From the sequence record OK905446.1: a DNA stretch of 64,000 bases, one strand, 5' to 3'. The first letter of the stretch is position 1; every line of letters starts with the position of its first letter. Below are positions 107 to 46,418 of the stretch, one piece after another. The position numbers and the translations under genes are program-made. The notes beneath the pieces were generated by a model that ran no database searches, was not told the origin of the DNA, and saw nothing but the letters and a program-made list of their open reading frames with translations.

Positions 107-183
107 GTGGCAGTGGGTGAAGTGGAAATACCTCCGGGTTGTGATTCCGGAAGATGCGGGTTCGATCCCCGTCTGTCACCCCA
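107..183 (+). tRNA. tRNA-His(GTG)
   Basis: Cloverleaf: acceptor GTGGCAG/CTGTCAC, anticodon arm CCGGG-TTGTGAT-TCCGG, T arm GCGGG-TTCGATC-CCCGT, discriminator C180, encoded CCA 181-183. Confidence 0.95.
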
Positions 184-286
184 AAGTGCATTTAGCGAAA
201 AAAGCATTGTAGTAGCGCATGGGAATTCTGAATGCTTGAAATACCCATTAAGATCGCCAGTAGCTCATGCAATGCACTAACAATTT
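184..286 (+). ncRNA. candidate structured RNA in the His-Cys spacer
   Basis: Perfect stems 185-192/271-278 (8 bp) and 202-208/231-237 (7 bp); 219-223/244-248 would form a pseudoknot; flanked by tRNA processing sites. Confidence 0.35.
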
Positions 287-360
287 GCCCGAATCGTATA
301 ATGGAAGTATGAGGGATTGCAAATCCCGCGGTCAGAGTTCGATTCTCTGTTCGGGCTCCA
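287..360 (+). tRNA. tRNA-Cys(GCA)
   Basis: Acceptor GCCCGAA/TTCGGGC, anticodon loop TTGCAAA, T loop TTCGATT, encoded CCA. Confidence 0.95.
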
Positions 361-376
361 TTTTGAGAACTATATC

Positions 377-601
377 ATGAAACCAGAAGTTAAAGAATAC
401 TTAGACAGATCTGTTAAATTTTCAATTCGCTTGACTGAAGATAGCATTCGAAGAACTTCTGTGAAGTTGCATGAGCAAAAAGCTCACTTGCATGAATTGA
501 GAAAGCAACTTGATTGTGAACATGAAATGGTTGCTGATAATAGCGGGTTTGAATTAATTACTGCAACATGCACTAAGTGCGGTTTGCAAGATCAGTATTA
601 A
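377..601 (+). CDS. hypothetical protein (74 aa, C-terminal Cys/His zinc-ribbon-like motif)
   Basis: ORF track start at 317 overlaps tRNA-Cys; ATG at 377 after GAGAA is more plausible; CEH...CTKC motif. Confidence 0.6.
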   Translation: MKPEVKEYLDRSVKFSIRLTEDSIRRTSVKLHEQKAHLHELRKQLDCEHEMVADNSGFELITATCTKCGLQDQY

Positions 602-803
602 AGACGATGCACAAGTTGGATGTGCAAAGGGGTCGGTTATGGTTCAAGACTACGGTCTAAGAGGTTAATCGCTCGGAACTGAGCATGTTTGAGTTGCTAC
701 TTGCGAGTAGTGATTAGTGCGTAAGAAGCCCGTAGCTAGTATAATGAGTTGATAACTCGGCAGCCTAGCAGTGTCGCCAACATCGACATAACGACACAGT
801 AAT
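602..803 (+). ncRNA. candidate structured ncRNA upstream of tRNA-Leu(TAA)
   Basis: No plus-strand ORF; hairpins 608-613/621-626, 647-650/655-658 (cUACGg), 671-675/680-684, 694-701/706-713, 735-739/765-769, 746-750/754-758, 771-776/792-797. Confidence 0.5.
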
Positions 804-880
804 GCGCATGTGGTCCAATTGGCAGAGGCATGAGGTTTAAATTCTCAGGGATGGCGGTTCGAATCCGCCCATGCGTACCA
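804..880 (+). tRNA. tRNA-Leu(TAA), short variable loop
   Basis: Acceptor GCGCATG/CATGCGT, anticodon arm TGAGG-TTTAAAT-TCTCA, 5-nt variable region GGGAT, discriminator A, CCA. Confidence 0.9.
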
Positions 881-886
881 AATTTC

Positions 887-963
887 GCCCAACTAGTCCA
901 ATAGGCAGAGGCGCTAGTTTCAAACACTAGATGATCCGAGTTCGAATCTCGGGTTGGGCACCA
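887..963 (+). tRNA. tRNA-Leu(CAA), short variable loop
   Basis: Acceptor GCCCAAC/GTTGGGC, anticodon arm CTAGT-TTCAAAC-ACTAG, 5-nt variable region ATGAT, discriminator A, CCA. Confidence 0.9.
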
Positions 964-1175
964 AATTAACTTAGCAACGCGAATCGAAAGAGAGTGATTA
1001 GACCGTACGACACTATGGTCTTAAAAGAAGATATAGCTGAAAGGCTATGTGTAGACCTGCTAAGAGTCCCGTGGGTCGTTAAATTATCAAATGGGATCTG
1101 CGAAGCGCGTGGCACACGCTGGCAATAAGAGCAAATATGTGTCTGAGCATGAGAGCAGCATGCCACCGATTAAAA
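964..1175 (+). ncRNA. candidate structured ncRNA downstream of tRNA-Leu(CAA)
   Basis: Closing stem 970-976/1058-1064 encloses hairpins 1000-1006/1015-1021 and 1031-1038/1043-1050 (GAAA tetraloop); further stems 1107-1111/1115-1119 and 1147-1151/1159-1163. Confidence 0.5.
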
Positions 1176-1185
1176 GTCGCTCAGT

Positions 1186-1193
1186 TATAAATA
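1186..1193 (+). promoter_or_regulatory. T4-type late promoter TATAAATA
   Basis: Exact gp55 consensus 25 nt upstream of ORF 1219. Confidence 0.8.
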
Positions 1194-1218
1194 ATATAAA
1201 CTAACTGAGGGATAAGAC

Positions 1219-1398
1219 ATGAAATTAAAAACGTTTGATGAATATCACGACTTGACTGAGAAAGTTGAGAAGCGTGGTGACAAGTGGGTTGCTCTTTCAT
1301 CTAAAGGTCGTGTACTTGGTACACATGATACCGAGAAAGAAGCAAACGCACAGATCGCGGCTGTTGAAATTAGCAAAGCAGAACGTGGTAAGAAATAA
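1219..1398 (+). CDS. small putative internal head protein (59 aa, MKLKTFDEYHDLTEKVEKRGDKWVALSSKGRVLGTHDTEKEANAQIAAVEISKAERGKK)
   Basis: Translated by hand (below ORF-track cutoff); GAGGG RBS, late promoter, N-terminus resembles T4 capsid-targeting sequence. Confidence 0.75.
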   Translation: MKLKTFDEYHDLTEKVEKRGDKWVALSSKGRVLGTHDTEKEANAQIAAVEISKAERGKK

Positions 1399-1403
1399 TC
1401 TAC

Positions 1404-1492
1404 GGAGATATGGTCTAATGGTATGACAGCACCCTGCTAAGGTGTCGGACGTTAATAGCGTTCTCTGGGTTCGACTCCCAGTATCTCCGCCA
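1404..1492 (+). tRNA. tRNA-Ser(GCT)
   Basis: Acceptor GGAGATA/TATCTCC, anticodon loop CTGCTAA, long variable arm, discriminator G, CCA. Confidence 0.95.
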
Positions 1493-7319: not shown

Positions 7320-7327
7320 CATAAATA
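7320..7327 (+). promoter_or_regulatory. late promoter CATAAATA
   Basis: One-mismatch T4 late box upstream of tail fibre 1; same variant precedes fibre 2. Confidence 0.7.
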
Positions 7328-7365
7328 CTGTCATATGAAATATTTCAATAAATGGAATGAAACTA

Positions 7366-10300
7366 ATGGCAGAATTACGTTCAACAACCGCGATTGGCGG
7401 TAACATAGTATGGCACGGAGGTAATTTACGTTTTGATCCGCAAGGGGAAACGGTTCTTTACAACGGCTATAAACTCTATACAGAAAATGACAAGCCAGAC
7501 CCGCATACTGATTTAACCGTACCTGTTGTTAAACTTGGTGGCGATACAATGACTGGCGACCTTGTCATTGCTAAAGCAACTGCTCAACTTCATTTAAGCA
7601 GTACTGCAAACACAGACGCAAGTTTGTACTTGACTGAAGATAGTGGTAATCACGGTGTTCGCTATCATTACGAAGGCAATGTGAATCAATGGCAAATTAT
7701 TCGCCGTGAGTCTGGGGCTGAAAATGTTGTCATGTACGGTTCTCGTTCTAATAACAACGTCGTGATTAACGGCATTGGTTACGTCAACACAACTCAGAGA
7801 ATCTTTGCAGATAACTATCACCCGAATGCAGACAAATGGACGACTGCTCGTACGTTGACATTAGCAGGCGAAGTGACTGGCTCAGTATCAATCGACGGTA
7901 CATCAAACGTAACGATTAATGCTGTTCTACCGAATCATACTACATTTGCAGAAGTTGGTATCAATGCAGCATATCCAGAATATAAAGCAACCGGCGCGAC
8001 CACAGCGGGTGTTGATACTACGGTAGATTGGGATACTCTTGTTCGTGGCGGTACATACTATAAGCTATCACAAGGTACAAATCGACCATCTGGATTTACT
8101 GGTTATTGGTATCTTCAAAACTTCACATACGGGTCTACTGAGAATACTACTCAAATTGCATACCCATACGGTCTGACTGGCAACGTTGGTACGATTGCTA
8201 TGCGTACTCAGTATAGCGACGTGTGGGAAGATTGGGTGTATATGTATCATACAGATTATCACCCGAATGCAGACAAATGGACAACTGCTCGTACGTTAAC
8301 GCTCTCGGGTGATGTTAGTGGCTCGGTATCAATTGATGGTAGCTCAAACGTTACATTGACAACTGTAGTTGCTGATGATTCTCACACTCACGATGGGCGA
8401 TACTACACTGAAGCAGAAGCCGATGGTCGATTTGTAAACTCGACTGGCGATACAATGACCGGTAACTTGACAATCGGTGCAAACGATCTTATTTTCGATG
8501 TTGGTGCCAAGATTACGCGAGAAGCAAACCCAGGTACTGCTTTAATCCCGGGTAGTGACAACTCACTGAACTTATATGCGCCTACTAACGGTAACTTGAC
8601 TGTCGTTCTATCTGCGAATGATTCAAACGACTCGTTTAACGTCGTTTCATCTGAAGGAACAGAAACAACCGGTCACGTGTATACAAGACGTTCATTCTGG
8701 GTTAATGGTCAAGGTCACACATACGCTGCTGGTAACATGTATGTCAACGATTCTCAACGAGTATTTGCGGACAACTATCACCCAAATGCTGATACGTGGA
8801 CAACTGCTCGTACGTTAACACTTTCAGGTGATGTGACTGGTTCTGTGTCAATCAATGGTAGCTCAAACGTTACATTGACTGCTACAGTAGGGAACGATTC
8901 GCACACTCACGATGGTCGATACTACACTGAAGCAGAAGCTGATGCTCGATTTGCGCCTATAGCAGGTGGCGGGTATGTTCAGAAAACCGGCGATACAATG
9001 AGTTCGTCATTGACAATTGCGGGTACTGCGGGTAATACTGAACCGTCTACTGACAACGTTAAAGTCGATTACTACGGTCTAATCGGTAATCGCGGGTCGG
9101 TATATTTGCATAACGCATACGCGGCAGGCGATGTTGCTATTGGCGTTGGTGGCATTTTCGGCACAAATCGAAAGCTAACAATTGCAAGTTCTGCTATTAC
9201 TGCTACTGTAAACATCACAGCTCCTACATTCGTTGGTGCTCTGAGTGGTAACGCATCTACTGCAACTACTGCAAAACAAGAAGCTAAGTGGACAACTGCT
9301 CGTACGTTGACAGTTGGTAAAACTGCTAAGTCAGTAGATGGGACGGGTAACGTAGCGTGGTCTGCTCAAGAGATCACGGGTACATATAGTGCCGATCAGC
9401 AAACATTTGGTACAAACAACCGTGTAACAACTGATGAATTCGTTTCATTGTTGAGTTCGAAGGGTGCGTTTTCTACGTTCTACTGGGTTTGTCGTGGTAG
9501 TTGGTCATACGCTGCACAGGTTACAGTAGATACGGGATATGGCGTATTCGGAACGGCCGGTTCGGTTATTGAAGTAATTGGTAACTCAACAACGGGTTGT
9601 ACGATTCGAGTAACTACTCCGACTACAGCATCTGGTGCAACTCAGAGACAAGAGTTCATCTATGTGAGTAACGGTACATCATACTCACCGGGTTGGCGTG
9701 CACCTTATGGTTCACATTACCACCCACTAGCCGATAAATGGACGACTGCGCGTACATTAACACTTTCGGGTGATGCAAGTGGTTCAGTATCAATTGATGG
9801 TTCAGCTAACGCTACGTTGGCAGTTACTGTTGCTGATAACAGTCATAACCACTCAAGCACGACTGGTAGTTTTACTCTTGGCGGAACACTGATTCATACC
9901 GGCACTGCTTCATACGATAAACTAAGGGTGTGGTCGAGTGGCTCTTACACAATCGGGATGACTAACAACTTGTCGTTTGGTTGGCTGGGCACTGATTATG
10001 CAATGACGTTCACTATGAACAACTCAACAACTCGTGGGTTCTTGTGGCGTGATGAGTCAGACGCTGTTACTGATGGTGCAATGTCATTGACTACTAACGG
10101 AAACCTGATGGTTAAGAACGTTATTGGTCTGGGTGGTGATACTACTCGATACATGCAGAACTCATCAAACGAGGGTAGCTGGCTTTTCCGTTCTGATAAC
10201 GGGATCACATGGCATTTCGGTGCTAGAAACACGTCATGGGTTCATAACTCAACCGATGCAACGAGTGGGTTCTATTACTATCAGGCAATTCAGTCTGCTA

Positions 10301-10623
10301 GTAACATTACTGCATATTCTGATGCGCGAGTTAAAACTAACATTGAGCGAATCGAAAACCCGCTTGATAAAATTGATAGGCTGAACGGTTACACGTATGA
10401 CCGTACTGACATTGAATGTCCGAGACAAACTGGTGTAATTGCTCAAGAAGTTCTTGAAGTTCTGCCAGAAGCTGTTGTTGAAGCTGGTGGTGACGCTGAT
10501 GGGCACTATGCAGTTGCATACGGAAACATGGTTGGTCTATTAATCGAGGGTATCAAAGAAGAGAAACGCAAGCGCGAAGCTCTTGAAGAACGTCTTGCTA
10601 GACTTGAGGCACTACTAAGTTAA
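7366..10623 (+). CDS. long tail fibre distal subunit 1 (gp36-like N-terminus, gp37-like repeats, peptidase S74 chaperone)
   Basis: MAELRSTTAIGGNIVWHGGN resembles T4 gp36 N-terminus; GDTMTG and HTH/HNH repeats; YSDARVKTNI...GVIAQEV...YGNMVGLLIEGIKE S74 domain; alternative start 7357. Confidence 0.9.
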   Translation: MAELRSTTAIGGNIVWHGGNLRFDPQGETVLYNGYKLYTENDKPDPHTDLTVPVVKLGGDTMTGDLVIAKATAQLHLSSTANTDASLYLTEDSGNHGVRYHYEGNVNQWQIIRRESGAENVVMYGSRSNNNVVINGIGYVNTTQRIFADNYHPNADKWTTARTLTLAGEVTGSVSIDGTSNVTINAVLPNHTTFAEVGINAAYPEYKATGATTAGVDTTVDWDTLVRGGTYYKLSQGTNRPSGFTGYWYLQNFTYGSTENTTQIAYPYGLTGNVGTIAMRTQYSDVWEDWVYMYHTDYHPNADKWTTARTLTLSGDVSGSVSIDGSSNVTLTTVVADDSHTHDGRYYTEAEADGRFVNSTGDTMTGNLTIGANDLIFDVGAKITREANPGTALIPGSDNSLNLYAPTNGNLTVVLSANDSNDSFNVVSSEGTETTGHVYTRRSFWVNGQGHTYAAGNMYVNDSQRVFADNYHPNADTWTTARTLTLSGDVTGSVSINGSSNVTLTATVGNDSHTHDGRYYTEAEADARFAPIAGGGYVQKTGDTMSSSLTIAGTAGNTEPSTDNVKVDYYGLIGNRGSVYLHNAYAAGDVAIGVGGIFGTNRKLTIASSAITATVNITAPTFVGALSGNASTATTAKQEAKWTTARTLTVGKTAKSVDGTGNVAWSAQEITGTYSADQQTFGTNNRVTTDEFVSLLSSKGAFSTFYWVCRGSWSYAAQVTVDTGYGVFGTAGSVIEVIGNSTTGCTIRVTTPTTASGATQRQEFIYVSNGTSYSPGWRAPYGSHYHPLADKWTTARTLTLSGDASGSVSIDGSANATLAVTVADNSHNHSSTTGSFTLGGTLIHTGTASYDKLRVWSSGSYTIGMTNNLSFGWLGTDYAMTFTMNNSTTRGFLWRDESDAVTDGAMSLTTNGNLMVKNVIGLGGDTTRYMQNSSNEGSWLFRSDNGITWHFGARNTSWVHNSTDATSGFYYYQAIQSASNITAYSDARVKTNIERIENPLDKIDRLNGYTYDRTDIECPRQTGVIAQEVLEVLPEAVVEAGGDADGHYAVAYGNMVGLLIEGIKEEKRKREALEERLARLEALLS

Positions 10624-10655: not shown

Positions 10656-10663
10656 CATAAATA
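10656..10663 (+). promoter_or_regulatory. late promoter CATAAATA
   Basis: 30 nt upstream of the fibre 2 start. Confidence 0.7.
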
Positions 10664-10693
10664 CATGATAAATGTACTCAATGAGAAAATAAC

Positions 10694-13600
10694 ATGGCAG
10701 AACTAAGATCAACTACCGCAATTGGTGGTAACATAGTCTGGCACGGAGGCAATCTTCGTTTTGATCCGCAAGGCGATACGATTCTGTACCAAGGCTACAA
10801 AATTTACACAGAACACGACACACCACTGCCAGGCGAACTAGGTAACGGTGGTACGACTTCTGCGTTTACAAAGACTGAAGCTGATGCACGATTCGCCCCT
10901 ATAGCGGGAGGTGGTTACGTTCAGAAGATCGGTGATACAATGACCGGTAAACTGACTAACACGGCAAATGAAATTGAAATCCGTGGTAGTTCTCCGCGTC
11001 TATTGCTTCAAGATAATGACGGTACGAAGCGTTGGTATCTAATCAACGATGGTGGCAATTTCAGCGTTCGTGAGAACGACACTGCAACAACTCGTTTCCG
11101 TATTGACGCGACTGCCGCGAACTTCATGATTGAAAATATCGACATCAACTCGAAAACAGCATTTCGTGGATTCGATTCTTGGCTGCGTATCAACGATCAG
11201 CTTGCATTCACGCAAGGCGTTTACTTTGGTGCGTCGAATATCAGAACTGATGGTCAGTTGCAAGTGGGTACAACTACGACTGATGGTCTATTGGCAACAA
11301 CTGCTGTTCTGAAATACAAAAACAACAACGTGTTTCACGACGGGTATCACCCAAATGCAGATAAGTGGACTACTGCACGCACGCTCACAACGACTCTAAC
11401 GGGCGATGTGACGGGTTCTGCGTCTATGTCTATAGATGGGTCGGCTAACGCGACTGTGACCGTTACAGCGACTGTAGCGAACGATTCGCACACTCACGAT
11501 GGTCGTTACTACACTGAGACAGAATCGGATGCTCGTTTTGCAAACGTAACTGGCGACACAATTACTGGGAAATACTTCTTCACTGAGTCTGATAGTAGCC
11601 CAACTGTAGCTGTGAATGATTCGCTTCATGGTATGTCAGCTTTCCCTATTGGCGGTAATGGTATAACTGAACCAGCCGGTACGCCTTTGATATTGCACTC
11701 AGGGACTGGCGGATCTCTTGCATACTCGCCTGATGGTGGTATCACATACCCATTCTGGGTTAACTTTGGCGGGGGTGCTTACTTTGCTGCTGATGTGACA
11801 GCACAGAACTTTGTCGGCGATCTTGTAGGCAACGCATCTACTGCATCATCTGCGGCTAAGTGGACGACTGCTCGTACTCTAACAATCGGTGCAACTGCAA
11901 AGACAGTGGACGGGACTGGTAATGTTACATGGACTGCCAAAGAGATTACGGGCGACATATACGGTGCAATGTACAAGTACAGACGCGATCATAGTGTAAA
12001 CATAAACGCGCCTGCTAAATTGCTAGATCAAGATGGGTCAGCAATCACTCGTGGATCTATTAGAGTTAGAGGTGTTGTAACGGGTACAGGTACCACTGAT
12101 ACTGCATCTAGTGCAACGTTCACGAATATAAATGGTGCATGGTCGGTTATTAATACTACTCAGAGTGGCTCAAGCAGTAACCGTGTTCGATTCTTCATTG
12201 ATACTGATGGTGATCCTGCTGTTTCAACGTGGCATACATCGAACTACGTTGTTGAGGTATATCATGAATTCGTTGATACGGGTGGAAACTATCATCCGAA
12301 TTTCTGGGGTATTGATGGGGTATTGTCTGCTGTTAACGGAACGTTGAAATACGGTAGTAACACTGTATTCCACGACGCATATCACCCAAATGCAGACAGT
12401 CTAACGACTGGACGTTTGATCAACGGTACTTCATTCAACGGTACGGCTGATATTACAACTGCGAAGTGGGGTACTGCAAGAACTCTAACACTATCTGGTG
12501 ATGCAAGTGGTTCAGTTTCATGGGACGGTTCAGCTAACGCTACGTTGTCAGTTGCTGTTGCTGATAACAGTCACAACCACAACAACTTGAGACCGAAAAG
12601 CCAGAACTGGAATACTCAGACTGATGATTTCGTAACTGGTTCATCTAGCTCAGTTGCCGGTGCTCCGACGACATCATTCATCAACTGGATTCAGTGGGGT
12701 CATAACGGCGGTTCGAAATATAGACACTCATTGTATTCATTCGCTGATGGGTCTGCAATGACTCAATTGTGGTATGGTTACAAGAACAACACGTCTGATA
12801 CTACATCAAATGCAGTTGGTCAGCGAGTGTTCATGGACAACTACCACCCGAATGCAGATACATGGACAACTGCTAGAACGTTGTCTTTATCGGGTGATGC
12901 AACTGGCTCAGTATCAATCAATGGTGGCTCAAACGTTACATTGGCAGTTACTGTTGCGAATGATTCACACACGCACGATGGTCGATACTACACCGAGTCT
13001 GAATCAAACTCTAGATTCGCACAGAATACTGAGTTCTCGACTACTCAAACATTCGCGGGTATCATCAACAAGTACCTTGCAAAAGTAACATCATCTGGTG
13101 TTCTAGAAGTTGCTCGATACATCGACTTCCACACAACTAACAGCACAGCCGATTATGATATTCGTCTAGATTGTTCATCGGCTGGCAACTTGTCGGTGGT
13201 TGGCGGTACATTGACTAGTACTACGTTTAACGCGACGGGAACTACTTCTGGTCTAGGTGTGACTTACAACGGCAAGACAGCAATTGGGGGTAGCAATGAC
13301 TCTTGGTTGAGATTGAACCCACATAGTCAGTTTTCAACGGGTATCTATTGTGGTAGTGCTGGTGTGTTGAGACACGATACGTTGATCTCAGTAGGGTCTC
13401 TTGGAAACAGCGATTCGATTGGTATTCGTAAAGGTGCACACACCACATGGGGTATTGATAAAAACGCATACATTGAAATGGGTGGCGGACCGACTACTGG
13501 TTCAACTGCATCATACTTGTGGCGTTACAAAGATACGGCTGGTGCTCGACTAAACGCTATGGATGTACTCGACCAAACTGGTCAGACTCGTCTATGGGTT

Positions 13601-13990
13601 GGTAAAAACAGCAAGTACTTCACATTTGACGTTGATGGTTCATTTACTGCTCTAGCTAACATCACGGCTTACTCAGATAAACGATTGAAAGATAACTTGG
13701 AAGAGATTGACAACGCTATCGGCAAAGTCAGTCAGCTTAAAGGTTACACATACAGTCGTATCGACGATGTAAACCCTGATACACGCTACGCGGGTGTAAT
13801 TGCTCAAGACGTTCAGAAAGTGCTTCCTGAAGTCGTACGCGAAGATTCTGAAGGGATGTTGAGTGTGGACTACGGTAACATGACTGCTCTATTGATTAAC
13901 GCAATCAACGAGCTTAATGGAAAAGTTGAAGAACTTCAAACTGAAGTGAAAGAACTTAAACGTCCGTGGTGGAAACGCTTACTTCGCTGA
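10694..13990 (+). CDS. long tail fibre distal subunit 2 (gp36-like N-terminus, gp37-like repeats, peptidase S74 chaperone)
   Basis: First 27 aa identical to fibre 1; YSDKRLKDNL...GVIAQDV...YGNMTALLINAINE S74 domain. Confidence 0.9.
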   Translation: MAELRSTTAIGGNIVWHGGNLRFDPQGDTILYQGYKIYTEHDTPLPGELGNGGTTSAFTKTEADARFAPIAGGGYVQKIGDTMTGKLTNTANEIEIRGSSPRLLLQDNDGTKRWYLINDGGNFSVRENDTATTRFRIDATAANFMIENIDINSKTAFRGFDSWLRINDQLAFTQGVYFGASNIRTDGQLQVGTTTTDGLLATTAVLKYKNNNVFHDGYHPNADKWTTARTLTTTLTGDVTGSASMSIDGSANATVTVTATVANDSHTHDGRYYTETESDARFANVTGDTITGKYFFTESDSSPTVAVNDSLHGMSAFPIGGNGITEPAGTPLILHSGTGGSLAYSPDGGITYPFWVNFGGGAYFAADVTAQNFVGDLVGNASTASSAAKWTTARTLTIGATAKTVDGTGNVTWTAKEITGDIYGAMYKYRRDHSVNINAPAKLLDQDGSAITRGSIRVRGVVTGTGTTDTASSATFTNINGAWSVINTTQSGSSSNRVRFFIDTDGDPAVSTWHTSNYVVEVYHEFVDTGGNYHPNFWGIDGVLSAVNGTLKYGSNTVFHDAYHPNADSLTTGRLINGTSFNGTADITTAKWGTARTLTLSGDASGSVSWDGSANATLSVAVADNSHNHNNLRPKSQNWNTQTDDFVTGSSSSVAGAPTTSFINWIQWGHNGGSKYRHSLYSFADGSAMTQLWYGYKNNTSDTTSNAVGQRVFMDNYHPNADTWTTARTLSLSGDATGSVSINGGSNVTLAVTVANDSHTHDGRYYTESESNSRFAQNTEFSTTQTFAGIINKYLAKVTSSGVLEVARYIDFHTTNSTADYDIRLDCSSAGNLSVVGGTLTSTTFNATGTTSGLGVTYNGKTAIGGSNDSWLRLNPHSQFSTGIYCGSAGVLRHDTLISVGSLGNSDSIGIRKGAHTTWGIDKNAYIEMGGGPTTGSTASYLWRYKDTAGARLNAMDVLDQTGQTRLWVGKNSKYFTFDVDGSFTALANITAYSDKRLKDNLEEIDNAIGKVSQLKGYTYSRIDDVNPDTRYAGVIAQDVQKVLPEVVREDSEGMLSVDYGNMTALLINAINELNGKVEELQTEVKELKRPWWKRLLR

Positions 13991-13996
13991 TAGAAG

Positions 13997-14004
13997 TATA
14001 AATA
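13997..14004 (+). promoter_or_regulatory. late promoter TATAAATA
   Basis: Exact consensus upstream of 14050. Confidence 0.8.
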
Positions 14005-14049: not shown

Positions 14050-14625
14050 ATGAGCAAAGCAGCACAATTGTTATTAGCTGTGATCGGTACGATTCTTATC
14101 CCTCTGGCTATCACCTCAATGAGCGTGGCGACTAACTACGGTAGTATGCAGGAAGCATTACAAGTTGTACAAGAACAAGGCAAGACCGCAGTTGAGCAAA
14201 ACGCTAAAATAATGCAAGAAATGACTGACATCAAACTAACAAACGCGACACAAGCACAACAATTGATCGGACTAGAAGGGGCGCAAGCCATTATAGTTAA
14301 GAAGCAAGATGAAATGCTAGTGAAATATGGTAGTATTGAAAGCGAAGTAAAAGCATTGAGGAGTTCTTCGGAATTGGGCGACAAAAATCTAGTGAATTCA
14401 GTTGAAGGTCTTAAAACAACCCAAAGCGCGATAATGACTAAGATAGACGGTACCCATACAAGATACTCTAAAATTGAGACTGATTTAGCCAGAGTCGAAA
14501 CATTAATTAACGTTGACTCATCTGACCGATTTACGGGGAAAGATGGGAAATTACTTAATACTCGTATTGATAATCTTGAGACGAAAGTTAACGAGATTGA
14601 CACACGAACTAAGAACGTACAGTGA
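14050..14625 (+). CDS. single-pass membrane coiled-coil protein, possible holin (gene t position)
   Basis: N-terminal hydrophobic helix, late promoter, lies between fibre genes and asiA as T4 gene t does; no sequence match recognised. Confidence 0.45.
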   Translation: MSKAAQLLLAVIGTILIPLAITSMSVATNYGSMQEALQVVQEQGKTAVEQNAKIMQEMTDIKLTNATQAQQLIGLEGAQAIIVKKQDEMLVKYGSIESEVKALRSSSELGDKNLVNSVEGLKTTQSAIMTKIDGTHTRYSKIETDLARVETLINVDSSDRFTGKDGKLLNTRIDNLETKVNEIDTRTKNVQ

Positions 14626-36830: not shown

Positions 36831-38009
36831 TTAAAATTTAAACTCATTCACTGCCATTGACTTATCGGCTGCGCTCCAAATCATCGTTCCGATTTCTTGT
36901 GGCGTTAACCGATCTTTCAATTTTTTAAAGTTGCTATACACCAGTTTGTGTGCTGACATAGCTCGTTCTACGGGACAGTGACCCCGCTTAATCAACCAAT
37001 TGTTGAAATTACTAACTGCTTTCTTGATGTCAATATCAATCACATCACTATCCATATAGCAATGCGGCTCGATTATAAAGTGTCTCTTTACGCCACACGG
37101 CGGACACCAATGCATACCATGCCAGTAATTTTGAGACTTTGACAATTCAGTTGTCGAGCACATAAGTGCCGCTGCAATATGCAGTATACCAGTCGAGTGA
37201 GTGATCACGATAGATGCTTTCTGGTTGATATACTCAGCTACATCTTTCAAAGAACCCTCAATGTATTCAACGTCATTGTCAATTGAATCAACAATTTCTT
37301 TGACTGATGCTTCATTGTTGTGAATAACAAACGTCAGCTTCGGCAAACGCTTCATGTACGAATTCATTTCTCTAATAAATTCAATGTACTCATCGTTCGT
37401 CCATCGCCGTTGGGACGTTGCATCATCACATACATGAAACACAAATCTTTTTTCAATTTCAGTGTAGCTCGGTCTACCACTGAAGTTCCATTTCAAGTCA
37501 AGAAGATATGATTCTTCTTCACAATGTATACCAAAGTATTCTTCTAGAATAATTCGATTCACTTCATTGAAATGAAACCAAATTGGGAATTGTAAGCTGT
37601 TAAAGTGTGATGTGTTGATCACTATGTCGAAATAATCATAGTCAATCGGCAGATTCGCACTTAACATGCTAGTTATCTTAGTATCTGCGACAATATCGCT
37701 GCGAATGTCTCTGTACGCTATGCAGCCACTTGAAATGTTATACTGAACATACAAATCAACTTCGCCGATTTCATCGAAATTTTCGATGTTTACCAGAGAT
37801 ACTTTCCCATTTAACTCATGCAGACTTATCATATATTCGATGAGAGGAAACAATTCATTGTGAAACGTGTACGTATGCATCGGTATGAATATTTCGAACT
37901 CTTTATCGTTTTTTGATAATGCATGAGCAAATTTCATTAAAGGGGCGAATGCGATGATAGAATCACCGACATTCGTACCGGGGATGTCAGCGATTATGCG
38001 AAACATCAA
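36831..38009 (-). CDS. GT9 (heptosyltransferase-like) glycosyltransferase
   Basis: VGDSII, RRWTNDEY, SLKDVAEYI, ITHSTGILHIAAAL. Confidence 0.75.
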   Translation of the reverse strand: MMFRIIADIPGTNVGDSIIAFAPLMKFAHALSKNDKEFEIFIPMHTYTFHNELFPLIEYMISLHELNGKVSLVNIENFDEIGEVDLYVQYNISSGCIAYRDIRSDIVADTKITSMLSANLPIDYDYFDIVINTSHFNSLQFPIWFHFNEVNRIILEEYFGIHCEEESYLLDLKWNFSGRPSYTEIEKRFVFHVCDDATSQRRWTNDEYIEFIREMNSYMKRLPKLTFVIHNNEASVKEIVDSIDNDVEYIEGSLKDVAEYINQKASIVITHSTGILHIAAALMCSTTELSKSQNYWHGMHWCPPCGVKRHFIIEPHCYMDSDVIDIDIKKAVSNFNNWLIKRGHCPVERAMSAHKLVYSNFKKLKDRLTPQEIGTMIWSAADKSMAVNEFKF

Positions 38010-43286: not shown

Positions 43287-44118
43287 GTTTTAGTATCGTA
43301 TCGCGATAAAGTTCGTAGTTGAATTCAACATCTTCAACACTACCATACAGACCTGACATTGGTGACGATATGATTCGATTCACAATCGTCTTATGGTCTT
43401 CGCCAGTACGTTCTGCAATGTCCCACACTGTTTTCACAAACGCTGTGTATGTACCAACAAACTTTTCTGAATCAATGAAGTCGATTTCTTTGTCATACAT
43501 CAACGCACTAAACCAGAATTCAGACGTAGTTGGTAACCAAACTCGCTTTGCCGATTTCAATACATCTATACCTGAGATTTTATTGGATAGCACTTTCTTC
43601 GAATCGTATCGAGTCTTGAGCATATTCATGTAATACACAGACGTAATCGGGTGCGGCTTAATAACAGCGTCGGGGTATTGTTCAAATACCAAATCTAGCT
43701 TGTCAAAATCAACTGCAATTTCTAATACATTTGTCCCACACAGAAACACAACGTTGTCATATTGCAGAAATCTAGGCTTTGATGATAGTTTATATTTGTC
43801 AGCGTGGTCGAACTCTCGAAAGTAGTCGTGAATGTAGTCAGACGGATTTTGGTAGGCATGTTCGAATATTTTCCGCTGGAAATCATCGTTCATGTATTTC
43901 AGGTGAATGAAACTGATTTGAGACACCCATTCATGAACACCGATGTTGCCGCCGTCATTGTGATTGATGTCGAAATTGCAAGGGATATTGTTCGAATTCA
44001 ATAAACTGACAATGTCCATGCACATGGCACGAACATTGTCTGCACAGTGACGCAGTTTAAGCGTCCCTATGCGACTCATATTATTGAAACCCGTCATTTC
44101 ATTGTTGTTTGGGTTCAT
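43261..44118 (-). CDS. KpsC/KpsS-like (capsule synthesis) glycosyltransferase
   Basis: DKY, VIKPHP, VLKSAKRVWLPTTSEFWFSALMYDKEI resemble the beta-Kdo/sialyl-transferase GT-B C-terminal lobe. Confidence 0.55.
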   Translation of the reverse strand: MNPNNNEMTGFNNMSRIGTLKLRHCADNVRAMCMDIVSLLNSNNIPCNFDINHNDGGNIGVHEWVSQISFIHLKYMNDDFQRKIFEHAYQNPSDYIHDYFREFDHADKYKLSSKPRFLQYDNVVFLCGTNVLEIAVDFDKLDLVFEQYPDAVIKPHPITSVYYMNMLKTRYDSKKVLSNKISGIDVLKSAKRVWLPTTSEFWFSALMYDKEIDFIDSEKFVGTYTAFVKTVWDIAERTGEDHKTIVNRIISSPMSGLYGSVEDVEFNYELYRDTILKLGGNFDNV

Positions 44119-44320
44119 ACTTTTCCACTATCTCACTAAGGCTATCATCATATGACTGCAAAATCATATCACGCTCACTCTCAAGTGAGGCAATGTGATC
44201 GATGATAGCTTCACTATTAGCAGTCATAGACTCAACTAAATTTTCAATAATCTTTTCTAGGCGTTTATTCGCGTCTTCGAGTTTCGAAACACGCGCCTCT
44301 AGATCTTCATTATAACTCAT
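44099..44320 (-). CDS. small coiled-coil protein
   Basis: LEARVSKLEDANKRLEKIIENL heptads. Confidence 0.7.
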   Translation of the reverse strand: MSYNEDLEARVSKLEDANKRLEKIIENLVESMTANSEAIIDHIASLESERDMILQSYDDSLSEIVEKYEPKQQ

Positions 44321-44332
44321 GTTTATTTCTCA

Positions 44333-44839
44333 CTAAACGGGAACTTGTGTTGTACGTGTTGTATTGTATGCGGTCGAACGGCTGGTATTATACGTCGTTG
44401 TCCACGTTGTAGTGTAACCAGTTGAACGAGTTGTGTTGTACGACGTTGAACGAGTTGTACTTCTAGATGTTGCATACGTCGTGCTGTAACTACCTTTTGT
44501 TACCGATGTTGTTACAGTCGTGTTGTAAGTGGTAGTATATGTCGTTGTTCTCGTTGACTGATACGTGGTATTTCGAGTAGTTGAACGTGACGTTGAATTC
44601 GACGTTGAATACGTTGTACTACGTGATGTCGAATACGTTGTACTACGTGATGAAAGACGATAGACGCCACGCAAGTTAGCTAAACTTATCGCGCCTGATG
44701 TTGGCACGTGGTTATTTTCAGTAATGTTCGGAACGATACCACCACCTCGGTAATACTGAGACAGCGAAGCAGCGCCGGTTTTGCTGAAATAATCACGCAC
44801 GGTACCAATTGAAATAGCACCAGTTGTAGGTGTTGGCAT
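44333..44839 (-). CDS. Thr/Ser-rich tetrapeptide-repeat protein with a phage fibre-tip-like N-terminal domain
   Basis: N-terminus GAISIG...SLSQYYRGG...VPTSGAISL; C-terminal 106 aa contain 66 Ser/Thr; 24-nt tandem repeat at 44607-44652. Confidence 0.8.
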   Translation of the reverse strand: MPTPTTGAISIGTVRDYFSKTGAASLSQYYRGGGIVPNITENNHVPTSGAISLANLRGVYRLSSRSTTYSTSRSTTYSTSNSTSRSTTRNTTYQSTRTTTYTTTYNTTVTTSVTKGSYSTTYATSRSTTRSTSYNTTRSTGYTTTWTTTYNTSRSTAYNTTRTTQVPV

Positions 44840-44870: not shown

Positions 44871-44878
44871 TATTTATG
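44871..44878 (-). promoter_or_regulatory. late promoter CATAAATA
   Basis: Same box as before both tail fibre genes; 31 nt upstream of ATG 44839. Confidence 0.7.
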
Positions 44879-44908
44879 CGAGTTGACTGTCCAACCCGCA
44901 CTAGGAAA

Positions 44909-45757
44909 TTACTGCTTAGATTTAGCTTGAATATGTTTGGCTAGTCGTGCATAGTCTTGAGTTGTCCACATTTGCGGAAACTGAGATTTCAATACTTCAG
45001 CTTGTTTGTATTCTTCTGCGCTCACGATTTGAGATTTCGCAATACGCTGTGGATACTTTGAAGCATTCAATGCATAACAGTAATCATCATCGAACGGGTC
45101 GTCACCGATAATATAATGCTTTTCGTTCGCATGATAAACATGTTCTGGATCAAAAAGCTGAATCTTATGCGCTTCAACAAAATCAAGATCTACAAGTGCC
45201 GCAGCTTCTTCAGCTTCTGCAATTGCTGCCTCAAGTTCGTCGTCAGTTACACCATGTTCGTTATGATTAACCGGATCAGGTCGACCTTCGGCAAAACCTT
45301 GAGAGTCGTCGAACAACTCAACTGCTTGAAGTTCAGCAAGTGCTAGATGCACGTCAGTTGAATCAATGTATTGAGCATTCAACGATACAAGATCAGGTCG
45401 CCAGAATTTCACATCATCAAGATTGCCGAGATAATGCGACTGACATTTGCCAATCTCGTTTGTTGATGTCTTGTATTCAACTGGCAGGTCGCCGAGTACT
45501 GGTTCATTGAACCCGATGTCACGCCAATGAAACTCACGAACAACCCATGATGGTAGTACTGACTTGTTATAAACATCACCTGTTCGAACTTCAGGACAGT
45601 TGCGCCATTCACGCACTGAGCTTTCGTCGTTGTTTGCATTAGAGATAATGTCAAACGGGTGCATTTTGATTCTTAGTTCTTCGATTGCCTGATGTGTGTG
45701 TAGCATATGATTCTCACTTATTAAGTTCAACTTCAAGTTGATGCATTTTACATTCAA
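44909..45757 (-). CDS. hypothetical protein
   Basis: Long ORF; start may be at 45706. Confidence 0.75.
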   Translation of the reverse strand: MNVKCINLKLNLISENHMLHTHQAIEELRIKMHPFDIISNANNDESSVREWRNCPEVRTGDVYNKSVLPSWVVREFHWRDIGFNEPVLGDLPVEYKTSTNEIGKCQSHYLGNLDDVKFWRPDLVSLNAQYIDSTDVHLALAELQAVELFDDSQGFAEGRPDPVNHNEHGVTDDELEAAIAEAEEAAALVDLDFVEAHKIQLFDPEHVYHANEKHYIIGDDPFDDDYCYALNASKYPQRIAKSQIVSAEEYKQAEVLKSQFPQMWTTQDYARLAKHIQAKSKQ

Positions 45758-46418
45758 TGATTAGCTTACGTGCGTCTGAGCCGTCGGCTTGCGTCAATGG
45801 CTTGCCAGCTTGGGTAAGCGTCAACAATTTCGTTTTAGCACGGTTACAGTCGCGTGCAGACTCGATTAAGTAATCATACTCGTGCGGATCAAGTAATTCA
45901 ACCGTCGCGTCGTTGACATCGTTGAGCGTTTTGATTTGCGTCGATTGTGCTTCAGCTTCACGACGAACTAGGTCAGCTTTCATTTCAAGCTCTTCAATTC
46001 TCGCGGCTGCTTCGTCGAGTGATTCTGGCTTAACATAACCACATTGCTCATTCAAGCTAATCCCGTACTGAGAACGCCACTGATTGTTGAACGTACGTTC
46101 GTATGTGTTGCGAATGCCTTCTTCCGATTTACCAATCGCTGCAATCACGTCACAGAACGGGATTTTACTGTCGTCGCGACGTACAGCACTTTCACCGTAT
46201 TTGTTTCGAGTTGCAAGAGCCCGCCATGTTTCTTTGTACAAGTAGTTGCTACCGTCAGCGTCTGCTAACCAGTAGTTAATCATTTCTCGCTCTTTAGCAT
46301 TGACTACTTTTTCAACGACCTTGAATGTCGGGTCAGTTTTGTCTTTAAGCGTTGGGGCAGGCTTACTACAACCAGCAAGTGTTGCAACTGCTAACGCGAC
46401 TAGAATTGCTCTTTTCAT
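45714..46418 (-). CDS. lipoprotein, paralogue of 32573-33292
   Basis: Lipobox TLAGC; shared motifs with the paralogue. Confidence 0.8.
   Translation of the reverse strand: MKRAILVALAVATLAGCSKPAPTLKDKTDPTFKVVEKVVNAKEREMINYWLADADGSNYLYKETWRALATRNKYGESAVRRDDSKIPFCDVIAAIGKSEEGIRNTYERTFNNQWRSQYGISLNEQCGYVKPESLDEAAARIEELEMKADLVRREAEAQSTQIKTLNDVNDATVELLDPHEYDYLIESARDCNRAKTKLLTLTQAGKPLTQADGSDARKLIIECKMHQLEVELNK

Follow-up and report, generated by a model that had tools for sequence, protein, structure and literature searches.

The gp38 adhesins of Straboviridae such as T2, T6, S16 and PP01 (PF05268; PDB 6F45 chain D and 9V85) are the closest described counterparts of a gene that we have analysed in VS1, a KVP40-like Vibrio phage of the family Straboviridae, genus Schizotequatrovirus. 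Published work has described gp38 as a modular protein, in which an N-terminal domain serves for attachment and a C-terminal one for specificity, and its partner is a gp37 fibre from which the S74 chaperone has been cut off. In S16 this chaperone is autocleaved, thereby exposing the docking surface for gp38 (PMC7917993). The g38-like gene of RB49 has moved away from the fibre locus, where its usual place is taken by a small unassigned open reading frame (ORF) (PMC3157838), and in Aeh1 g37 is tandemly duplicated and followed by small unassigned ORFs (Trojet et al. 2011, PMC3157838). The VS1 gene lies at positions 44333..44839 on the minus strand of a 64,000-nucleotide stretch of sequence record OK905446.1, referred to below as the window; it starts with ATG and encodes 168 amino acids (aa) followed by a stop codon, and it is defined by the ORF call, its orthologues and purifying selection.

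The best reading of this gene, to which we give an even chance, is that it encodes a displaced gp38-type fibre-tip adhesin carrying a new hairpin module. Like gp38, the VS1 protein is small and two-part, conserved towards the N-terminus and variable distally, and its presumed partner is likewise a gp37-like fibre that has lost its S74 chaperone. Moreover, glycine-rich sister proteins with an N-terminal module (N-module) of the VS1 type are homologous to the gp38 binding domain, and the order of a fibre gene followed by a small gene is found for most N-module relatives. Unlike gp38, the VS1 protein has neither glycine-rich motifs nor a polyglycine sandwich and carries a 106-aa Ser/Thr hairpin instead, and its gene is located 30 kb from the fibre genes. 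As in RB49 and Aeh1, the two g37-like genes of VS1 are arranged in tandem and followed by a 191-aa ORF, with the N-module gene at another location; in contrast to the g38 of RB49, however, the VS1 protein is not a recognisable g38 sequence and is related to it via the shared N-module family only. An earlier, sequence-only reading of this DNA had guessed that the protein stands in for gp38, and this guess gained support from the N-module family, its synteny with S74-ending fibres and a gp38-homologous glycine-rich subfamily, whereas the structures that it had envisaged, a mucin-like array or a beta-solenoid, are not supported.

A constrained and poorly annotated gene

Orthologues of the VS1 protein are KVP40.0254, pp2_249 of phi-pp2, QD01_260 and p0320 of 6E35.1a, and it matches phrog_30374, for which no function is assigned, with E 2.7e-66. 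Orthologues were gathered by tblastn and from IMG/VR; two word-indexed protein searches gave four matches and then none. When orthologues were compared, the ratio of nonsynonymous to synonymous substitutions (dN/dS) was 0-0.06 in the N-terminal domain and 0.17-0.26 in the repeat, and the indels between them were in frame and in multiples of 12 nt. The low dN/dS values and the sizes of the indels indicate that the gene is genuine and constrained, and the ORF at 44333-44839 is a real two-part gene under purifying selection. Between VS1 and QD01, the synonymous divergence of the repeat (44336-44653) is 0.76 and that of the N-module 0.14, an approximately 5-fold difference which suggests either recombination or slippage within the repeat, or alignment ambiguity.

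The annotated RefSeq start of KVP40.0254 (L003 3667-4260) lies 21 codons ahead of the conserved Met that opens the N-module in all relatives, and it was probably mis-set, rendering the annotated gene 21 codons too long. Intact hairpin ORFs occur unannotated in the re-annotated record of 6E35.1a (177 aa), D479 (170 aa; L091:4001-4513) and F86 (185 aa; L092:4001-4558), and short spurious ORFs on both strands are annotated where they lie; consequently, the protein is missing from proteome databases built on those annotations. In some records the gene carries the label 'cell wall mannoprotein', an automatic RAST annotation driven by composition, and we have rejected this identity as a composition artefact that finds no Pfam match. 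Searches of the VS1 protein against Pfam (even at E<=1), NCBIfam and PDB sequences yielded no match, and a 68-member family profile also gave none against Pfam, NCBIfam and PDB sequences.

Mirror symmetry of the Ser/Thr region

Residues 1-62 of the protein are of ordinary composition. Residues 63-168 (106 aa) include 44 Thr and 22 Ser, amounting to 66/106 or 62%, with only two Gly and a single Pro. The four-residue periodicity described in the sequence-only reading was borne out by the autocorrelation of the residues other than Ser and Thr, which gave z = 4.8, 5.3, 4.6 and 4.9 at lags 4, 8, 12 and 16, relative to 5000 shuffles, and the DNA of the repeat shows tandem periodicities of 12 and 24 nt. 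The register shift that had been noticed at KGSY is also real, and it is exactly central, with 52 residues preceding K115-G116 and 52 residues following. The six N-x-S/T sequons, at residues 81, 90, 106, 135, 151 and 159, had been counted correctly and they account for all six Asn of the region, but this is not significant because it is expected of a region that is 62% Ser/Thr (chance expectation about 0.06).

When the second half of the region is reversed against the first, the positions that are neither Ser nor Thr coincide. Every fourth cross-strand pair then places Arg or Lys opposite Tyr, Trp or Phe, while the other positions are mostly Ser or Thr. All possible fold centres were scanned and the number of Arg/Lys residues opposite Tyr/Trp/Phe was counted for each, and this number peaked only once, at the central Lys-Gly, in each of VS1, QD01, KVP40, phi-pp2, 6E35.1a, D479, F86 and the metagenomic protein L015. 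Basic/aromatic pairs number nine each in VS1, QD01, KVP40 and phi-pp2, 12 in 6E35.1a, 13 in D479, 11 in F86 and five in L015, with no like-with-like pairs in any of these proteins, and 0/500 residue shuffles or period-preserving block shuffles equalled the pair counts of the eight orthologues. The pairing spans the whole Ser/Thr region, such that the C-terminus would return to the N-module. The arm that bears the basic residue varies by lineage and the basic/aromatic pairing is kept, which constitutes compensatory covariation. A comparison of repeat lengths across relatives, which had been proposed as a check, showed arms of about 30, 52, 54, 56 and 60 residues that change in concert and are always equal within one protein. 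Furthermore, the turn is Lys-Gly or Gly-Lys in all orthologues, and three lineages (6E35.1a, D479 and F86) have a Cys on each side of it.

On the minus strand of the window, arm 1 (residues 63-114) corresponds to 44498..44653, the turn K115-G116 to 44492..44497, and arm 2 (residues 117-168), which is predicted to pair back along arm 1, to 44336..44491. An AlphaFold2 (AF2) model based on a 68-sequence alignment placed strands at residues 93-114 and 117-138 around the K115-G116 turn, with low confidence. The mirror symmetry, the basic/aromatic complementarity, the concerted arm lengths and the Cys-bracketed turn together lead to an antiparallel hairpin, and the mirror symmetry implies that neither a mucin-like coil nor a solenoid explains the repeat. 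Judged by these patterns and by the model, residues 63-168 behave as a single antiparallel beta-hairpin that turns at K115-G116 and has 52 residues in each arm.

The Ser/Thr-hairpin subfamily also takes in L015, L038, P0001, probably P0008, and L011. The last is a metagenomic protein of 379 aa (L011:8001-9140) with a Ser/Thr repeat of about 317 aa in which Lys/Trp replace Arg/Tyr; the fold centre that scores best would give it arms of about 158 residues (p = 0.002 and 0.016), and an S74-ending fibre is encoded two genes upstream. The distant relatives P0005, P0006, P0007, P0028 and P0080 fail the hairpin test.

When the VS1 model was compared with the PDB by Foldseek, the matches were confined to long hairpins of pore-forming toxins and were not significant (E >= 1.4), and neither gp38 nor ice-binding proteins occurred among the fold matches. 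A likeness to pore-forming toxins was rejected as one of geometry only, at E 1.4 or worse. The stem hairpins of CDTb, the complement membrane attack complex and lysenin have long-hairpin geometry in common with VS1 and nothing more, and unlike these stems the VS1 hairpin lacks an alternating hydrophobic face and an oligomerisation domain, and it is not similar to them in sequence. Tryptophan zippers and OspA-type sheets are two-stranded or single-layer sheets with cross-strand aromatic/cation pairs. The VS1 hairpin would resemble them in being a polar, Thr-rich ribbon with regular cross-strand pairs and no hydrophobic core, but its arms are much longer (52 residues each, and possibly about 158 in L011), and no homology is implied. 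In the needle of T4 gp37, each chain runs out and then returns. The VS1 hairpin would share with this needle (PDB 2XGF; PMC12028318) a long, thin, up-and-back beta structure and a distal end proposed to face the receptor; the needle, however, is an obligate trimer with metal-binding motifs and forms part of gp37, whereas the VS1 hairpin belongs to a separate small protein and has a basic/aromatic ladder and no His motifs.

The N-module family and its association with tail fibres

The N-module, which is presumed to be a fibre-attachment domain, comprises residues 1-62 (44654..44839, minus strand) and was modelled by AF2 with a predicted local distance difference test score (pLDDT) of 90-97. Two G-x-I-S half-repeats flank its Y-Y-R-G-G-x-x-V-P core, and Y30, R31, G32, G33, P46 and G49 are nearly invariant across the family. 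A phmmer search against 1.84 billion representative proteins found the module in 874 clusters at E<=1e-3, nearly always occupying residues 1-60, and the best matches align residues 1-60 with residues 1-60. The proteins bearing it range from 73 to 612 aa, and the C-termini behind it vary, including SBBP beta-propellers, PKD, BACON, Calx-beta, Hint and polyglycine types, with polyglycine motifs present in 32/140 scored proteins. A search of BFVD with the VS1 model retrieved family members only, one of them named 'Phage tail protein', and a few members belong to PHROGs named tail fibre or virion structural protein. The family is large and uncurated, and no Pfam or NCBIfam model covers it. The module is present in a single copy per genome in VS1 and KVP40, and a second copy was sought in the 64-kb VS1 window and not found.

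Relatives in IMG/VR number 337, and the best 80 loci, representing 58 distinct proteins, were used for the locus counts. There the N-module genes sit within tightly packed, co-oriented arrays. A neighbour from one BLAST cluster is present in 49/58 loci, lying directly upstream in 41, and the larger members of this cluster that were tested are tail fibres; two small members, of 160 and 268 aa, did not match fibres. The Pfam Peptidase_S74 threshold was passed by all six neighbours tested. With a local hidden Markov model, an S74-ending protein was detected at most three genes upstream in 34/58 loci and directly adjacent in 25, the S74 match ending 0-19 aa from the C-terminus; the genes of VS1 and KVP40 differ from those 25 in not being directly downstream of a chaperone-ending gp37 gene. 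Among cultured phages, a fibre gene followed by a small gene occurs in Xanthomonas RTH11 and phiXF1 and in Stenotrophomonas BUCTxx99, a comparison of gene order only. In Burkholderia JC1, gp59, with an endo-N-acetylneuraminidase as its best match, precedes the N-module homologue gp60, and in Stenotrophomonas DLP_6 the fibre and N-module genes follow the same order with one gene between them. Contigs bearing the family members P0081 and P0008 are too short to show their neighbouring genes. Synteny ties the N-module to S74-ending fibres.

A relationship to gp38 emerged from the glycine-rich members of the family. One of them, P0081, has a sub-threshold Pfam GP38 match (20 bits, the cut-off being 25), and its AF2 model (pLDDT 76, predicted template modelling score 0.73) matched PP01 gp38 in Foldseek with E 4.4e-12 and S16 gp38, in the gp37-gp38 tip complex, with E 2.2e-9 and probability 1.0; the next match after the gp38 proteins had E 0.9. 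A profile of 18 polyglycine members matches S16 gp38 with E 6.1e-9, positions 90-288 of the profile aligning with gp38 residues 71-234, and PP01 gp38 with E 1.2e-4. On these profile and model comparisons, the glycine-rich N-module proteins are gp38 homologues from about residue 90 onward, which would place the N-module in the position of the gp38 tip-attachment domain. The glycine-rich C-terminal specificity domain of gp38 (PF05268) was not encountered in the VS1 protein, whose Ser/Thr region has the two Gly mentioned above and which gave no Pfam, PDB or fold match to it.

Fibre genes, promoter-like signals and neighbouring genes

The candidate docking partners in VS1 are two gp37-like distal long tail fibres encoded on the plus strand, fibre 1 at 7357..10623 and fibre 2 at 10694..13990. 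Both carry a C-terminal S74 intramolecular chaperone that is recognised as Pfam Peptidase_S74, in agreement with the sequence-only reading. Each paralogue is preceded by its own unit consisting of a G+C hairpin, a T-run and the 8-mer CATAAATA (7320-7357 and 10656-10694, plus strand), which suggests that they are separately transcribed alternative distal fibres. A tip motif preceding the cleavage site and specific to the partner fibres was sought, and a shared motif was found that seems generic to S74 fibres. In the KVP40 RefSeq record (L096 5765-9143), about 3.4 kb after gp37 lack any annotated feature, corresponding to the position of the second fibre gene.

It had also been claimed that no gp38-like gene follows the fibre genes. 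This is correct with respect to Pfam, since no GP38 match was found after them, but it overlooks a 191-aa ORF in that slot (14050..14625, plus strand), which lies directly after the second fibre gene, belongs to phrog_15749 and has no Pfam or NCBIfam match. A perfect late-promoter-like 8-mer at 13997 precedes it, and its homologues are KVP40.0297, the orthologue, and VP6E351A_0364 of 6E35.1a, which has virion counts of 2 and 2. Given its location in the usual gene 38 slot, it could be another fibre accessory protein.

The 8-mer CATAAATA is also present upstream of the hairpin gene, at 44871..44878 on the minus strand and 39 nt before the ATG; the identical sequence lies 37-38 nt ahead of the ATG of both fibre genes, and upstream of the hairpin gene it is invariant in QD01, phi-pp2 and KVP40. 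We take it to be T4-late-like, by comparison with an eight-base T4 late-promoter consensus. The argument for late expression derives from the identity of the 8-mer and its spacing before both fibre genes, an observation within the window only. A sigma-70-like site was not found near the start of the hairpin gene. Abutting the promoter-like motif is a conserved 11-bp stem-loop (44876..44901, minus strand; intergenic RNA fold z = -5.4) that may serve to terminate the upstream gene or mark the edge of a cassette.

A 73-aa coiled-coil-like ORF (phrog_5851; 44099-44320, minus strand) begins 12 nt after the stop codon of the hairpin gene, a position that is kept in KVP40, QD01, phi-pp2 and 6E35.1a, and it is probably co-transcribed with the hairpin gene. 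Two genes upstream of the hairpin gene lies a predicted lipoprotein with a lipobox (phrog_8733; 45714-46418, minus strand), whose homologue in 6E35.1a (VP6E351A_0309) has virion proteome counts of 4 and 2. A 392-aa ORF (36831-38009, minus strand) located among genes for radical-SAM proteins, QueC and nicotinamide adenine dinucleotide (NAD) salvage, about 6 kb from the hairpin gene, shows a weak, sub-threshold likeness to GT9 heptosyltransferases (Pfam 19 bits relative to a cut-off of 22; TIGR02193 E 8.7e-6). Five tRNA genes (His, Cys, two Leu and Ser) are clustered at the start of the window (107-1492, plus strand).

Receptor dependence

Since the 1990s KVP40 has served as a model vibriophage of broad host range, with OmpK as its known receptor, and phage T6 recognises Tsx via gp38. 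OmpK is Tsx-like (PMC12028318). Among 18 Schizotequatroviruses of Vibrio crassostreae examined in a 2025 study, 16 need OmpK while K566 and K567 use LamB, and no phage candidate for OmpK binding was obtained (PMC12028318). The hairpin ORF is absent from the gene set of that study because gene callers break on the repeat. Using tblastn, we found the gene in exactly the 16 OmpK-dependent phages, and in D479, and it was absent from K566 and K567, whose genomes were part of the collection searched. In the latter two, similarity to 6E35.1a is lost 2 nt beyond the upstream gene's stop codon, and at least 9 kb of different sequence take over from there. Presence of the gene tracks OmpK dependence, a correlation that is suggestive only.

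The replacement in K566 (L097 9752 on), when aligned with 6E35.1a (L090 3951 on), starts exactly within the intergenic region where VS1 has its stem-loop and promoter-like motif. The K566/K567 block is consistent with cassette exchange at such stem-loop/promoter-like elements.

Proposed function and alternative explanations

As a displaced, domain-swapped relative of gp38-type tip adhesins, the gene product would be expressed late, be associated with the virion and serve the long tail fibre as an accessory protein. The N-module would dock on the cleaved tip of a gp37-like fibre, and the hairpin would project as a thin rod of about 15-18 nm (52 residues at ~3.3 A), such that its Lys-Gly tip, its Tyr/Arg face, or both, may contact the cell surface; more speculatively, the target would be OmpK, the Tsx-like receptor of KVP40-type phages. 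The most specific form of this proposal, which we regard as possible rather than probable, is that the hairpin protein is the OmpK adhesin of the Schizotequatroviruses, a ribbon of about 17 nm zipped by Arg/Lys-Tyr/Trp pairs and capped by a Lys-Gly turn that is sometimes Cys-bracketed, carried on cleaved gp37 via an alternative module which would define a vast sister family of the gp38 adhesins in marine and soil phages.

Several observations weigh against the adhesin proposal. The hairpin has an AF2 pLDDT of only about 50-57, and the N-module itself matches neither the gp38 N-domain nor any solved structure in sequence and fold searches. In VS1 and KVP40 some 30 kb separate the gene from the fibres, and its neighbours there are radical-SAM, QueC and NAD-salvage genes. 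The promoter motifs are consensus matches only, and the one ahead of the hairpin gene is not clearly kept, since 6E35.1a and F86 have only a related element and D479 has none that is clear. Presence in virions and fibre contact are putative. The particle proteome of 6E35.1a (94 proteins) lists no orthologue, but the annotation that was searched had split the locus into three spurious small ORFs (VP6E351A_0311-0313) and the database lacked the ORF, rendering the absence uninformative; mass spectrometry of JC1 virions did not detect the homologue gp60, but it missed the adjacent fibre gp59 too. Finally, the OmpK correlation reflects one ancestral event, in which at least six further genes were exchanged as well, and the authors of the receptor study attribute the switch to a collar-fibre allele (PMC12028318).

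Alternatively, the protein could be a fibre-associated helper that does not remain in the virion and acts as an intermolecular chaperone or assembly factor, comparable to T4 gp38 or to gp27 of Alteromonas phage V22. Genes directly 3' of fibre genes often encode chaperones (PMC7289586), the failure to detect gp60 in JC1 virions would fit such a role, and synteny alone cannot separate it from that of an adhesin. We nevertheless assign it a small probability, given that the adjacent fibres come with an S74 intramolecular chaperone of their own, and that the C-termini of the family are of binding types (propeller, PKD, BACON, gp38-like polyglycine sandwich) and hypervariable like adhesins, whereas chaperones are conserved. 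The tail, fibre and virion names met in BFVD and the PHROGs also argue against a helper, and the known chaperone families (Tfa, T4 gp38 and V22 gp27 types) gave no Pfam, NCBIfam or PHROG chaperone match. A protein decorating the virion elsewhere, on the head, tail, whiskers or fibre shaft, with a flat Ser/Thr and Tyr/Arg ribbon that sticks to environmental polymers such as chitin, mucus or capsule and not to the primary protein receptor, would account for the absence of linkage to fibres in KVP40-type phages and is compatible with the late-promoter-like motif; aromatic/Arg ladders and hydroxyl arrays may also resemble carbohydrate-binding surfaces. The synteny of the family is, however, specific to S74-ending fibres and the N-module sits where gp38 has its tip-attachment domain, and we therefore consider this explanation unlikely.

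The gene might also be non-structural cargo of a variable island, concerned with host takeover, defence or counter-defence, that has reused a widespread N-module. Its location among auxiliary metabolic and radical-SAM genes would suit this, as would the exchange of the whole block for another island in K566 and K567, in whose subclade the authors describe a new anti-defence island. We find this improbable in view of the late-promoter-like motif common to the hairpin and fibre genes, the location of relatives inside tail and fibre modules, the homology of the family to gp38 adhesins, and the strong conservation of the gene, with its presence in the 16 OmpK-dependent relatives and D479. As to the two structures envisaged at the outset, a disordered, glycosylated mucin-like array of Ser and Thr or a TxT beta-solenoid resembling ice- or surface-binding proteins, the Ser/Thr content of 62%, the six sequons, the automatic mannoprotein labels and the weak GT9-like ORF 6 kb away could be cited for them. 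Both are very improbable. A strict period of 4, or 8, is too short for solenoid coils, which take about 12 residues or more, and the symmetry is a mirror one and not translational; the mirrored, ordered periodicity with its basic/aromatic ladder, and the presence of only one Pro, do not accord with a mucin. Complementarity, concerted arms and the Cys-bracketed turn demand a hairpin, and AF2 gives one. The idea that the sequons form a modifiable array also gained no support, since their number follows from composition and the glycosyltransferase-like ORF is sub-threshold and 6 kb distant; the mannoprotein label stems from RAST composition matching.

Implications

The link to the gp38 family, the association of relatives with S74-ending fibres, and a presence/absence pattern that matches OmpK dependence make this ORF a concrete candidate for OmpK binding. 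The 60-aa N-module marks hundreds of uncurated proteins encoded beside fibre genes and could help to annotate receptor-binding proteins in metagenomes. Moreover, the hairpin would represent a core-less beta-ribbon of unusual length that is clearly marked by covariation, and as such would be of interest for studies of protein structure and design.

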